64,000 nucleotides of DNA from Azolla caroliniana. Taxonomy: Eukaryota > Plantae > Polypodiophyta. The DNA is taken from assembly GCA_043228905.1 (NCBI GenBank), contig JBHGNT010000001.1:2480001-2544000 (forward strand), read 5' to 3'. Within the stretch, counting starts at the first letter, position 1; the number at the start of each line of letters is the position of its first letter. The notes under the pieces are model-generated. The model did no database searches. It had not been told where the DNA came from and saw only the letters and a list, made by a program, of their open reading frames with translations. Position numbers and translations under genes: made by a program. Positions 9,428 through 53,938 of the stretch are shown here, piece by piece.

Positions 9428-9754
9428 ATGACTATAACCATTCACAATCAGTGCAACGTCCCTGTCGAAGTGGACGTTATGAGATATGGTAATGGTCAGC
9501 AGGGTTCGGCGACCCGCGTGGATGCAGGAACAAAGCCATTGTCTCTGCACATCAACCATCAGGGCAATGTTTACCAGAACCATGACATTGACAAAATCCG
9601 TGTTACATTCCTGACAGAGCAAGGAAAGCGGATTATTCGCACCAAGCAACACCAGTTAACACAAGCGGATCGCAATGCCAAACATCTCTACTTCGTTATT
9701 ACTTCCGAATATGACCTCCCGCCGCCGACATATACTCCGCCACTGCGTGGCTGA
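9428..9754 (+). CDS. Small beta-rich protein, unassigned tandem family, copy 1 (108 aa, HGN/YGN subgroup)
   Basis: GC-richer ORF with A-rich start context behind a TATA box and 5'-UTR intron. About 40% identical by eye to 18517 (shared RxGN, LSxHIN, QNxD, RxTFL, QHxxTxADRxA, LxFVxT). Confidence 0.85.
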   Translation: MTITIHNQCNVPVEVDVMRYGNGQQGSATRVDAGTKPLSLHINHQGNVYQNHDIDKIRVTFLTEQGKRIIRTKQHQLTQADRNAKHLYFVITSEYDLPPPTYTPPLRG

Positions 9755-10854
9755 CAGTTTCTTTTGTGTTGGGGGTGGGGGGGGGGGGGGGTCGCAGTTG
9801 CAGTAGAGCCCGGGGGTGTCTGGAAATAAAAGGCCAGAGCCAATGGTGATTGATTGCGGGGGTGTCTTATGATTGGCTCACGTAGCCATTCTTGGATATT
9901 GGGGATGCGCAATTTATTCATTGGCTTTGAGCGGAGAGAAGTGGGAGGGAGGGATCATACTGATCCTCCTTTCTTTTTCTAATACTTAATTCATGTCTGC
10001 CGTACTTCTCTTTTTGTTATTATTATTTTTATGTATTTGTGGGAGCGAATTGATCTAATAATCCCGTACTTTCTGTTTGCTAACTAACTCTAAGTGAAGT
10101 GCACACTCCGTTTTATTATAATTTCATGTGTGTAATAAGTTTATTATTTGAAGGCCCTTTTCGTTCTCTCCAACTCTCTATGTCTCGCTCACTCTCACTC
10201 TCTCGTTCGTTCGTTCGTTCGTGAGGGTGAGGTTGAGGTTAAAATGCTTGAGAAAACAGGACCCTTCTTTGCGAGTGGATATATAGGCATTCTATTGGCC
10301 AAGCAAAGGCGAACACCAAATAAAACATAATTGGACTCCTTAGAATTTCAAGCTTAGCACTCGATCATCATGTGACATCATTATAATGGTATGTATGTAT
10401 ACAAGTACGACATATGAAGTCTTTTCATGTATTATTTACATCCACTTAAATGAATCATCTCTACTTTATATGTTTCCATCAAGTGCATTGTACTTACATT
10501 TGAATGTAAGAAATTGGTTGACATCCACGATTACAAAACCTTCACAATTATTGACGCTCGACTACAATATTAGTATAAAGCTGGTGGAACTGGTGTCAAC
10601 AATAATAGGTTATCTAAAGATATGATTCCATATGCATGTCATGTAATTAAATGTACAAGCTATTTATGACATTATGTTTTAGCTATAAACTAACCATTAT
10701 CTCATATGACAGGTGCAATGCCCATAGTAATTATTTTCAAACAATATCCATCCACACTTTGAGGTTATATGGTACTATGTTTTATTTACACACTTTCATT
10801 TTGCATCTTGCTTTACTTGCTTATATCGTACTAATATTGGGTGGGTGGGCAGGG

Positions 10855-10913
10855 GAGTCTCATGGTGAAAGCTAAATGATCATGCTTGGAGGGGTTCAAT
10901 TCCCCTAAGACTC
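10855..10913 (+). other. Truncated tRNA-like hairpin element (4 copies: 10855, 19014, 24383, 28964)
   Basis: GAGTCT..AGACTC acceptor-like stem and a perfect T-arm AGGGG-TTCAATT-CCCCT (B-box-like). Only 59 nt; no anticodon arm. Confidence 0.55.
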
Positions 10914-11700
10914 AAGTTTCTAAAAAGCATGATTAAAAATGTATTAAAAATATATATAATGTTCAATATATATATATATATATTATAAGTTTACTTGCTT
11001 ATAAGGAAAAGTATTGCAATACTCTAAACGTTAGTATTGATTGAGTAGCTCTTATCAAGGTTGATTGTAAAAGAGCGGTTACATGCGAATATTACATGCA
11101 GAGGAGTCACACATGTAACCTTTAATAATAGTAAAAAGGGATTCACATAAGTGGCACAAAGAATATTTGGATGTGTAGGGTTGTATGCAAAACGTATGTT
11201 TCTATGATTGTATGCGTATTATGGATGTATGAATGACTGTGTGTATATGCCTGTGTGCATGTGTGAATGTAGGTCGATGGAGACAAACAAGGGAGGGACC
11301 TCAATGTATTATTTGATGGAGGGGAATAACGTCTACGCATTTACACACCCCAAGTTTATCGGTACAATCATATAATATTGTCTAAATTTAACAGTTGAAT
11401 AAGCACCCTACATAAATTCTAGTGGAGACATGGACCAACAAGTTGATGTGTTGGAACAACAAAAGCTAACTTCTCTTCTCGATGCAACTTACAGAAAACC
11501 CAAGTTGGATTGATATTGATGCGCTTGAAAAACACAGATTATGTTGCCTTGGGAATTTAGAAGATATTATGTGTTCTAGCACAAAGTAGAAGTTTGAATC
11601 TAAGCCTTTTTGGTACATTATATGAGCTATTATCAATATCATGATCCTGTTATAATATACCCAACGATACATATTATCTCTGTGACTACTTGTGTCCAAT

Positions 11701-11777
<77 letters not shown>
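11701..11777. repeat. Compound (CT)n(AT)n microsatellite
   Basis: Directly visible; reduced to a short (AT)n in the paralogue at ~19642. Confidence 0.95.
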
Positions 11778-11780
<3 letters not shown>

Positions 11781-51800: not shown

Positions 51801-52779
51801 GGCGCCAAGCAAAAATGGTCAGAAATCTGAGGCTGTCTATGTTCATACCGACCGGACAAAGAGATTTTATGCATCTCTCGGATGGACACAAAATAAATAA
51901 TGTATCACCTAGGCAATCTTCACACACGGCCTAGGTTCCATTGTACATGACGCCATGGGGAAATTCCGAAACAACCGAGTCAAAAGAACTAATGGTCACG
52001 TCTAACATTCTCCTTTGGGACCTCTCTATCTTGTCCGTATGATCGGGATGGAAACCCTCTAATAGATACTTTTACGTTATGTACTTCTTACGTCTTATTT
52101 TTGTTTGTGGTTGTTTCGATAAGATATGTTAGGGTTAACCCATATATACATGCAACACTTAGTATGATCTCATACTTTAGGGTGGGCGATCTTGCTCATT
52201 GGTCTAGAAGTTAACATCTAGACAGAGAGGCATGTCAATCTTGTTAAAACATTATGGTTCAACATCGGCCTTAAGCCTACTAAGCATCTATCTCATGTTC
52301 CTGCTTGCATTTGGAATATCATAATAGTTATTATATGTTTGACAATTGATGCAACCATAGTGATACTCAAGGATGGGAAGTAGTAACCCTTCTTATTAGG
52401 AATTAGGAGTTACATACGAGACGATGTGTTTATTTGGACCCATAAGTCAAAAATATCCTCCTTGTGGATGGTAAAAAAACTATTATCTTACGTGAATGGA
52501 TTCCTCGCTAGCTCATGGTTGTGATTTAAACGAGGTTGAAACATCCAAGCTTTAGACATTGACAAATTATGAAGATGTAAAGTCGATGCCCAAACATCTT
52601 TGGCTTTAGTATTGTAAACTTTGCCATAGAGGGGAAGATGAAAACAAGTAGTTGTTGATATGGTTCAAAGGGCCAATAGGGAACTGAAAATGCCTAATTA
52701 TAGTAGGAAGTTTGTGGATGGGCAACACTTATTATTAACATTATCACGAAGGTTCCTATTTGCAAAACAAAAAAGATTA

Positions 52780-52870
52780 TACATGTACATGACCCTATAG
52801 TCATATGGAGTATAAATTTGATTGATTCAGGGGCAACTTCCAACAACTTCATTGGAATCCAGCAATATAC
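52780..52870 (+). mobile_element. Decayed Ty3/gypsy aspartic protease relic
   Basis: LIDSGATSNNFI at 52818-52853 matches the LIDSGATHNFI retropepsin motif; surrounding frames are broken. Confidence 0.5.
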
Positions 52871-53195
52871 TTGGAAAGAAGTTATCCCAGTCATAAATGT
52901 TTATTGCCTCAATCCATGATGTCATCTAATACCATTGACCACAAGATGACTCCATTTGAACTTTGTATTGTTGATTTGTAACAAGAAAATATCGTGCTCA
53001 ACCTCATATTGTCTCCCATTCATTTGCATTCCACGACAAGCTTTGTCCATAGGAGGAGCCATCAAGGATTGATTCATTGGTTTGCAAACAAGCCAAATAT
53101 TATCTTTCCACTTGTGTAGGAGTCATCCTCGACAAATGTGTATAGGTTTAAGAATCCTCATCCGTGATAGCCTATAACAATCAAGTAAGAGAGGG

Positions 53196-53420
53196 ATGGA
53201 CGAAAAGAGAGTAATTGTCACTTATAATAATTGTGGACTAACAACAACCAATTGCTTCTTTTGTACGAATCAAGTAGAAGATAACACTCATTATTTTCAT
53301 ATAATGTTTAACATTTGCTTGTTAGATTTTGGGTTACATTTCTCATATTTGGCAAGCTATTTCACATTGTTATTTGACACCAAGATAATGGGTGTTTTCA
53401 TGATTCACACAACTCAATGA
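53196..53420 (+). mobile_element. Possible LINE zf-RVT relic
   Basis: GLTTTNCFFCTNQVEDNTHYF fits C-x2-C-x4-E-x3-H; otherwise degraded. Confidence 0.4.
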
Positions 53421-53692
53421 GAGATCCTTTTTTCTTTTTCATAAACTTTGGGGATTGCATCATGATTGGGATATATGCATAATTTGTTACTGTCTTTGGT
53501 GGTAGGCATGGATTATCTATGAAAGTTTGAAGAGAGCATTGACATTTCTTTCATTGGTGGAGTTGTTCTTCTTGCATATTGGCGATTCATGATCATGCCC
53601 CACGGAGTAATTGAGACACCACTCAATTATGGTACCGATATTTGGTAATTTTCTTAAGAATCACTGCATGATTTTTTTTTAAAAGCCATGTT

Positions 53693-53938
53693 TTATGGAG
53701 TATAAGAAAGATCCTCACGGTAATCCGCCATGAGGTGAAGGTCCTTCTTCAGTATCATCCCAGTTGTGGCGGATGATGCGATGATGCTCGCATCATAATA
53801 GGTGGAATCGAAGGTGATAATGCAGGTTTCTCCAACCTTCAGAAATGTTGATGAATTATTGACACTACGTAGCATATGCTGAACTATGATATCTTCCGGG
53901 AAAGGATTTGTATATGCAAATCTTTTAGTCTTTCCCAT
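53693..53938 (-). CDS. Small beta-rich protein, family copy 6 (81 aa, SV subgroup)
   Basis: YTNPFPxDxxVQxM shared with 34671 and RSV..IIT shared with 31591/22290. Putative 5'-UTR intron at 54045-54202 (CAG|GTATG ... ctacAG); UTR gatctaaag..accc shared with 34629. Confidence 0.75.
   Translation of the reverse strand: MGKTKRFAYTNPFPEDIIVQHMLRSVNNSSTFLKVGETCIITFDSTYYDASIIASSATTGMILKKDLHLMADYREDLSYTP

Follow-up and report, generated by a model that had tools for sequence, protein, structure and literature searches.

A lineage-restricted family of small, predicted beta-sandwich proteins in a tandem W-box array of Azolla caroliniana

Introduction

Along 64,000 nucleotides (nt) of Azolla caroliniana DNA (contig JBHGNT010000001.1, positions 2,480,001 to 2,544,000 of the forward strand; this whole stretch is called the window below), short open reading frames (ORFs) recur behind similar upstream DNA, and the locus raises the question of whether these ORFs constitute one family of proteins and, if they do, what such a family might be for. 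A preliminary description, made from the letters alone, had answered with an unassigned family of small beta-rich proteins, six intact and one decayed, arranged in a birth-and-death array behind a shared W-box promoter as a candidate defence system. Tandem clusters of defence genes, and W-boxes as the targets of WRKY factors, are both familiar in plants. The reading we favour, with a confidence that stops slightly short of even, is that the window, which is plant-like nuclear DNA with a G+C content (GC) of 0.31-0.43, carries a real, expressed and lineage-restricted family of small intracellular beta-sandwich proteins in a W-box array, most likely acting as stress- or defence-responsive binding modules. 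The parts of this reading differ in strength, in that we regard a real protein-coding family as highly probable and a role in stress or defence as a plausible if rather doubtful proposal.

Gene content and paralogy

In the ORF listing of the window all six ORFs of the preliminary description are found intact and where it had placed them, encoding proteins of 81-123 amino acids (aa), and they fall into four groups to which relatives from outside the window can be added. Group A comprises g9428 (9428..9754, plus strand, 108 aa, with an HGN motif) and g18517 (18517..18888, plus, 123 aa); group B comprises g27557 (27557..27850, plus, 97 aa, with a divergent HGN motif and an ATG internal to a longer ORF started by TTG) together with P0005; and group C comprises g22290 (22290..22580, plus, 96 aa, with an SV motif) and g31591 (31591..31935, plus, 114 aa, opening with a MGGLLSTTT tail predicted to be disordered) together with further relatives. 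Group D consists of g53938 (53938-53693, that is 53693..53938 on the minus strand, 81 aa), which lies outside the array, and P0006. The protein of g27557 is identical to P0002, which is encoded on two ENA contigs. A truncated D-type copy at 34582..34754 (plus) begins with an intron-acceptor region, beyond which a frame of 27 codons opens with an ATG at 34671 and is then closed by a stop; this frame is 59% identical to the first 22 residues of the g53938 protein (tblastn), and the earlier description of 34671 as a pseudogene holds. The coding sequences (CDSs) of the family are GC-rich islands, at 0.41-0.50 against 0.32-0.37 in the flanks (0.49 against 0.36 for g9428).

The sequence pattern that had been proposed as common to these copies is visible in alignments, and the division by HGN and SV motifs is real, while the statistics of similarity give four groups where two had been drawn. 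Pairwise BLASTP yields two solid pairs only, g9428 with g18517 (E ~1e-17) and g22290 with g31591 (E 1e-9 to 1e-10), the remainder being weak. Comparison of profiles reaches further, with hhalign aligning group A to group C over 88 columns, near full length (probability 92%, E 6.6e-7), and group B, colinearly but more weakly, to both (P 0.017 with A, 0.007 with C). Furthermore, when hidden Markov models (HMMs) trained with one group left out are scored against the full set of 1155 ORFs in the six frames of the window, groups A, B and C are mutually recovered as the best non-training matches (C to A, 2e-5; A and B to C, 2e-4; A and C to B, 0.0092). The DNA in front of the genes shares the same history, as a 914-column profile, built from the 900 bp in front of each of the five arrayed ATGs, finds a full-length match at each gene (E 1e-174 to 8.5e-243) and the alignment of these regions places their elements in identical order in every copy. 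This non-coding DNA is independent proof that the five arrayed genes descend from a common ancestor, and together the profile comparison, the leave-one-group-out models and the homologous upstream DNA identify them as true paralogs.

The sixth gene is placed with less certainty. No profile built without group D recovers g53938 among the 1155 six-frame ORFs of the window (E 0.7-2.4), and hhalign of group D against group C gives a weak match (P 0.0068 over 38 N-terminal columns). The 34671 relic scores against the D profile at E 2.7e-6. It is found immediately beyond g31591, where the array ends, and over 53 bp its acceptor region matches the one of g22290 at 75% identity (E 1.7e-5); a D-type relic likewise trails the C-type gene of the ENA contig L016. 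Only weak protein similarity and the homologous intron-acceptor stretch thus tie g53938 to the others, and group D is a probable branch of the family. The single family of six and a relic put forward earlier becomes, on this evidence, five certain members, all arrayed, and one probable member missed by every profile built without it.

Promoters, introns and transcripts

Each arrayed gene follows one plan, in which a module of repeated GAAGTCAAG-type motifs is followed by a TATA box, a CT-rich non-coding exon 1, an intron in the 5' untranslated region (5'UTR) and a single coding exon. The promoter module is ~400 bp long and contains several W-box motifs (TTGACY) in the same orientation, which are read on the plus strand as the reverse complement RGTCAA; GAAGTCAAG itself occurs 22 times against 0.67 occurrences expected. 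The TATA boxes and the GT...AG introns occupy homologous positions, and the introns, given below from the GT donor to the end of the acceptor AG, close with ACAG followed by A. The 5'UTR intron is 164 nt long in g22290 and is predicted to be ~176-249 nt long in the other arrayed genes, and the part of the 5'UTR within exon 2 is ~55-130 nt.

The upstream units, all on the plus strand, differ mainly in how many W-boxes they retain. That of g9428 (8402..9427; promoter profile E 8.5e-243) has a W-box cluster at ~8518-8850, a TATA box at 8980 and a predicted intron from 9051 or 9077 to 9299, and that of g18517 (17623..18516) has W-boxes, a TATA box at 18128 and a predicted intron at 18193-18409. 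The g22290 unit (21447..22289) carries eight W-boxes, a TATA box at 21960 and a GT...AG intron at 22034-22197, the g31591 unit (30709..31590) five W-boxes, a TATA box at 31258 and a predicted intron at 31361-31536, and the g27557 unit (26658..27556) a TATA box at 27188, a predicted intron at 27283-27469 and W-boxes that are mostly mutated, with one left. Counted as RGTCAA over the upstream 1 kb, the motif is found 6 times at g9428, 5 at g18517, 8 at g22290, once at g27557 and 5 times at g31591, nearly always in the same orientation, against a density of ~0.9 per kb over the remainder of the window (35 to 64 kb). The C-type copy on L016, outside the window, keeps the promoter module with five W-boxes. 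Of the homologous W-box and TATA promoters that had been described for five copies, the upstream DNA and the TATA box are indeed homologous in all five, and clusters of W-boxes are present in four.

Evidence of transcription comes from run X1, the only public run that holds part of 17600-23000, whose label as RNA is a guess. Its two contigs are both confined to coding exons, one matching 18487-18828, at g18517, with 0 differences from the window and the other matching 22197-22648, at g22290, with ~95% identity. In front of 22197 the second contig carries 67 extra letters that diverge from the intron, and the last 30 of these resemble, by eye, the end of exon 1 (22004-22033) with 5 mismatches. 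With 5 mismatches in 30 exon-1 letters, and with the consensus of its loose end absent from the window at up to 3 mismatches, this contig must stem from a close homologue rather than from the g22290 copy itself. It looks like the spliced mRNA of such a homologue, from which the intron corresponding to 22034-22197 has been removed, and constitutes modest evidence drawn from one run and its contigs. Spliced transcripts, on which the earlier proposal had been made to depend, would therefore be represented by this contig, joined as it is to exon-1-like letters exactly at the predicted acceptor. The structure of a single-exon CDS behind a 5'UTR intron thus has a transcript contig behind it for the g22290 type, and homology for the introns of the other genes.

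Turnover of the array

The array spans roughly 35 kb and contains 16 matches to the promoter profile, all on the plus strand. Promoter fragments are more numerous than genes: 5 of ~12 units are intact, and at least seven are promoter relics that lack the coding exon. The relics begin at 1759..2174 (nhmmer E 1.2e-85), with no family ORF after it, and 5001-5286, and continue with a promoter and intron relic at 5772..6354 (nhmmer E 1.3e-42 and 1.1e-11), downstream of which there are stops in all frames. A relic at 13932..14653 (nhmmer E 2.3e-91) is homologous to the g22290 promoter, self-blastn pairing 13710-14651 with 21229-22158, and other DNA now stands in place of its coding exon. Three shorter promoter fragments follow at 15230-15468 (E 2.2e-33), 16229-16361 (E 9.9e-07) and 16741-17104 (E 5.5e-36), and a further relic lies at 25941..26446 (E 1.3e-64), all by nhmmer. 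No coding remnant was found in the window after any of these promoter relics. Self-blastn also detects colinear blocks among the units and larger segmental duplications of several kb.

Duplication extends to pairs of genes. The 5.7-kb contig L016 is colinear with 30700-35500 of the window, its stretch 575-3400 having a C-type gene with the full W-box promoter and then a D-type relic with its coding part deleted, and this shared order of C gene and D relic indicates that the two were duplicated as a unit. Sequence is furthermore exchanged in patches. A gene of the P0004 type is present in three copies (L009:481-810, L015:481-810 and L016:1566-1895) whose flanks, intron and 3' halves are nearly identical and which differ by a swapped block at codons 29-58 (proportions of synonymous and nonsynonymous differences, pS 0.38 and pN 0.34) and by a second, N-terminal block, with zero CDS differences outside the swapped blocks. 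As pS is as high as pN, the patch is most readily explained by gene conversion from a diverged donor, or by chimeric assembly at low coverage, and not by local hypermutation. With its tandem paralogs on one strand, its seven or more promoter relics and the truncated copy at 34671, the locus appears to be the birth-and-death array that had been claimed, and we consider such turnover well supported.

A repeat of another kind lies downstream of g9428 (11415-11692) and of g18517 (19224-19641), its two copies being 97-99% identical, and within the latter a 141-bp unit is duplicated at 19359-19641. This repeat is much younger than the duplication around it and may be a small mobile element.

Divergence of the coding exons

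The coding exons have diverged more than the DNA that precedes them. In 10 of 10 gene pairs identity is higher over the 700 bp upstream (0.53-0.77) than over the CDS (0.41-0.59), and the ratio of nonsynonymous to synonymous divergence between paralogs (dN/dS, Nei-Gojobori) is 0.76-1.73. Set against the adjacent non-coding divergence, taken as the Jukes-Cantor distance over 400 bp of UTR, intron and exon 1, dN is 0.36 against 0.15 for g27557 and P0005, 0.57 against 0.40 for g9428 and g18517, and 0.34 against 0.27 for g31591 and P0004. In a simulation with substitutions only, an ORF survives 0.3 substitutions per site in 1.5-4% of runs. These observations would describe a protein that conserves the core of its fold and a small number of motifs; elsewhere it changes as fast as neutral sequence or faster, and its copies exchange sequence. 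Diversifying selection fits this pattern of rates, and homogenised flanks around older coding segments fit it equally; rapid evolution of the protein would likewise fit a role in defence without proving one.

Predicted fold and acylation

AlphaFold models were built for two members with a ten-sequence alignment, and both are predicted to form a seven-strand beta-sandwich, in keeping with the beta-rich fold first suggested. The g9428 model, in which the first strand begins at residue 2, has a predicted local distance difference test (pLDDT) score of 80.8 and a predicted template modelling score (pTM) of 0.71; the g31591 model (pLDDT 78.0, pTM 0.71) has a disordered stretch at residues 1-10, where pLDDT falls below 50, and the ESM Atlas's own model of this protein has a pTM of 0.73. 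We think it likely that the family adopts a seven-strand sandwich of immunoglobulin-like or transthyretin-like type. As had been noted, a signal peptide and conserved Cys appear to be lacking: the maximum 12-residue Kyte-Doolittle mean over the first 32 residues is 1.24 or less, which reveals no N-terminal hydrophobic segment, no dedicated signal-peptide predictor having been used, and no Cys is conserved across the family members.

In an exhaustive structural search (VIA-align) the two models return the same list of neighbours. Highest are the luminal domain of HGSNAT (8jkv, 8tu9; Z 8.0-9.5, with best values of 9.1-9.5) and the extracellular domains of PepT1 and PepT2 (5a9d, 5a9h, 7nqk; Z 7.4-8.7), followed by domain 4 of the cytolysins (Z 7.1-7.9), IglE and TssJ (Z 6.2-7.6), the S-protein homologue (SPH) 6g7g (Z 6.7 for the g9428 model and 7.8 for the g31591 model, over 92-97 residues at 6-8% identity), transthyretin (Z 5.6-6.8) and the aegerolysin OlyA (Z 5.7). 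Foldseek against the PDB gives weak, generic matches only (template modelling score, TM, 0.34-0.55), and the atlas fold search finds hypothetical bacterial proteins and PepT (TM 0.61-0.67). Both models thus bear out the proposed sandwich, while the structural matches are generic and the SPH values, with Z 6.7-7.8, lie in the range of unrelated sandwiches.

Part of group C begins in a different manner. For g31591, P0003, P0004, P0007 and P0008 and for the copies on L015 and L016 the first residues of the protein read MG[GSC]LLST, which fits the PROSITE N-myristoylation pattern PS00008 (M-G-{EDRKHPFYW}-x-x-[STAGCN]-{P} at the N-terminus), and in g31591 this motif sits in the disordered tail ahead of the first strand. 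The pattern is absent from the other groups and from g53938, and the tail is lacking in the other groups. P0003 and the L016 copy have Cys at position 3, and a Cys at this position beside N-myristoylation would allow palmitoylation and hence dual acylation. The motif suggests that one module may exist in soluble and in membrane-tethered versions.

Distribution

A hmmscan against Pfam of the six ORFs, and then of 12 members, returns at E up to 10 sub-threshold noise only, and an hmmsearch of PDB sequences with the family profile gives nothing below E 1.2. When 1.84 billion representatives are searched exhaustively with the profile, six proteins are found, a collection of 5.8 billion clusters holds no members beyond those six and P0008, and overall ~8 relatives were found among ~15 billion proteins searched. 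All of these are encoded on ENA metagenome contigs, short and of low coverage, that belong to two sample series, and a search with the group C alignment adds two further copies from the same sample series. The ENA contigs are colinear with the genomic DNA, introns included, and look like DNA of the host, from this plant or a close relative, and not like transcripts. A G-run, GGGGGTGGGGGGGGGGGGGGG, lies at 9764-9790 of the window, just past the g9428 stop codon, and the related ENA contig L001 terminates inside it. Judged by public proteins, then, the family appears to be lineage-restricted, and it is absent from the annotated proteomes in the collection searched; with no Pfam match and no relatives outside one host lineage, it is still unassigned, as the preliminary description had it.

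Discussion

We propose a model in which segmental duplication, the loss of coding exons and gene conversion in patches together build up and wear down an array of small genes. The promoter would give WRKY-type transcription in response to stress or elicitors, and the proteins would act inside the cell as small binding modules whose surfaces are free, or are driven, to change. What is kept would be the hydrophobic core and a set of motifs, namely the HGN/RSV loop, R-N-x-D/E-I-x-K-I/L-R-F and a D-R helix. Members with MG[GSC]LLS would be N-myristoylated, and palmitoylated where residue 3 is Cys, hence working at a membrane. Biotic interactions would be the most likely use of such proteins. In its boldest form the model would add a class not recognised before to the immune or antibiotic proteins that work inside plant cells, a repertoire of variable-surface beta-sandwich binders, decoys or toxins that are soluble or N-acylated, switched through W-boxes and confined to one non-seed-plant lineage, whose surface is kept variable by positive selection and gene conversion; we regard this version as a long shot.

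Several observations count against the model. On the side of regulation, g27557 has one W-box only in its upstream 1 kb, most having been lost by mutation, the RGTCAA scan finds no W-box close upstream of g53938, and W-box counts in paralogous promoters are non-independent observations. Transcript support comes from a single run with a guessed RNA label, and its informative contig, at ~95% identity, derives from a paralog or another strain. On the side of selection, the near equality of pS and pN in the mosaic patch points to gene conversion and not to selection on point mutations, and a dN/dS near 1 with high dS would also fit weak constraint or homogenised flanks. N-myristoylation, moreover, is proposed from the motif only. 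As for the fold, the neighbours among known structures are generic, with a best Z (9.1-9.5) only slightly above the 7-8 that is usual for models without a clear match, so that no function would follow from them, and the sharing of one predicted fold among the groups is by proxy, both AlphaFold models having drawn on the same ten-sequence alignment.

The most serious competitor, which we nevertheless hold to be unlikely, is that these are young and weakly constrained orphan genes, expressed behind a strong duplicated promoter and largely dispensable, with no specific role in defence. The range of dN/dS, 0.76-1.73, is close to neutral and is accompanied by high dS, over half of the units have already decayed to relics, the near-identical metagenome copies show mostly replacement changes together with a frameshift or early stop near the C-terminus, and the protein collections searched hold no relatives outside one lineage, all of which would suit such genes. 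Neutrality, however, does not predict a dN up to 2.4-fold the divergence of intron and UTR, and the simulation makes it unlikely that five ORFs would stay open at this divergence without selection; a confident compact fold with a conserved core pattern is also atypical of ORFs that arise de novo. That the loci are non-coding RNAs whose open frames are accidental is barely credible: ORFs of ~100 codons do arise by chance in 64 kb, yet homology at the protein level persists here between copies whose DNA no longer aligns, the ORFs stand out as GC-rich islands with confident fold predictions, and they are retained above neutral expectation. Scarcely more probable is a repeated unit carried or captured by a mobile element, with the ORF as its passenger or product. 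Promoter fragments that outnumber genes and are scattered over 35 kb would suit such an element, whereas the array copies share one orientation and lie inside larger colinear segmental duplications of several kb, self-blastn finds no terminal repeats bounding the units, Pfam detects no transposon-type domain in the proteins and the plan of TATA box and spliced 5'UTR is that of an ordinary host gene.

It is improbable, though less so than either of the last two explanations, that the family is new in sequence only and represents a very divergent branch of DUF7748 (PF24928) or of SPH (PF05938). DUF7748, a set of uncharacterised Streptophyta proteins of 130-150 aa that we compared by Pfam HMM and language-model scores only, is plant-specific and of similar size, and in protein-language-model features no named cluster lies closer to either of the two members queried (neighbour scores of 0.88 with 153 shared features and 0.92 with 188). 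SPH proteins are likewise small plant proteins (~110 aa) with a single beta-sandwich, encoded by multigene families, and 6g7g is among the structural neighbours of both models. Against this, neither PF24928 nor PF05938 is listed when 12 members are run through hmmscan at E up to 10, and the atlas consistency check flags the DUF7748 call as probably wrong, with 2 of the 10 best family-bearing hits agreeing; SPH proteins are secreted, whereas those described here have neither a signal peptide nor conserved Cys, and the Z values are common among unrelated sandwiches. In the papers covered by our literature search DUF7748/PF24928 is unmentioned, and the search for moss orphan-gene or W-box arrays returned nothing useful.

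Likeness to other systems is of shape or of layout. HGSNAT and PepT1/PepT2, the best neighbours of both models (Z 8.0-9.5, root-mean-square deviation 2.3-2.9 A over 82-95 residues), supply domains of large animal membrane proteins at 6-12% identity, with no sign of common descent or function. Domain 4 of the cholesterol-dependent cytolysins and OlyA are comparable in size and sandwich topology, and an aegerolysin is a weak language-model neighbour (0.77); Pfam, however, reports no aegerolysin (PF06355) or thiol-cytolysin match, and the window holds no partner MACPF gene. TssJ and IglE of type VI secretion have a flexible, lipidated N-terminal tail ahead of a ~100-residue beta-sandwich, as the MG[GSC]LLS members may have, yet they are bacterial periplasmic lipoproteins with a lipobox and the analogy is architectural only. 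The closest resemblance in layout is to plant defence arrays, with which the locus shares tandem paralogs and relics, clusters of W-boxes, coding sequence more variable than its flanks and patchwise exchange, and from which it differs in that its protein belongs to no known defence family.

Returning to the model of W-box-driven intracellular binding modules, tandem and fast-evolving lineage-specific families, W-box promoters and the fold itself are all familiar. What appears to be new is the sequence family, a coding exon that diverges faster than its promoter and intron, mosaic exchange between copies and a putative split into soluble and acylated forms. Were the model correct, the locus would provide a compact and tractable example of a lineage-specific, rapidly diversifying repertoire of intracellular plant proteins outside the known defence families, with convenient handles in proteins of ~100 residues, an array of ~35 kb that could be deleted, W-boxes that can be counted and natural mosaic variants. 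Even without a role in defence, it would offer a case for a folded orphan domain that persists through the replacement of nearly all its surface residues, and for coding exons that outpace their own promoters and introns in divergence. Furthermore, it bears on the number of small genes missing from protein collections, as none of these proteins comes from an annotated genome in the collection searched.

Neighbouring features

Beyond the array, ORF fragments on the minus strand between 37690 and 44015 indicate a multi-exon gene which, judged by eye from motifs in the ORF list, resembles a RAD5-type SNF2 helicase with a RING finger. A Ty1-copia retrotransposon occupies 45391-51119, with an open gag (46528-47589) and an open pol (47619-50663) between long terminal repeats (LTRs) that are 94-97% identical, and in the region of its 5' LTR a 208-bp unit is present in triplicate (45621-46249). 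A tandem repeat of an 86-bp unit (55134-56226; 12.7 copies, 97% matches) lies in the interval from g53938 to the beginning of the next gene. That gene, on the plus strand at 56546-63116, is a multi-exon kinesin motor gene, motor motifs being present in the ORF fragments at 56546-57172, 58914-59222 and 59491-59904.

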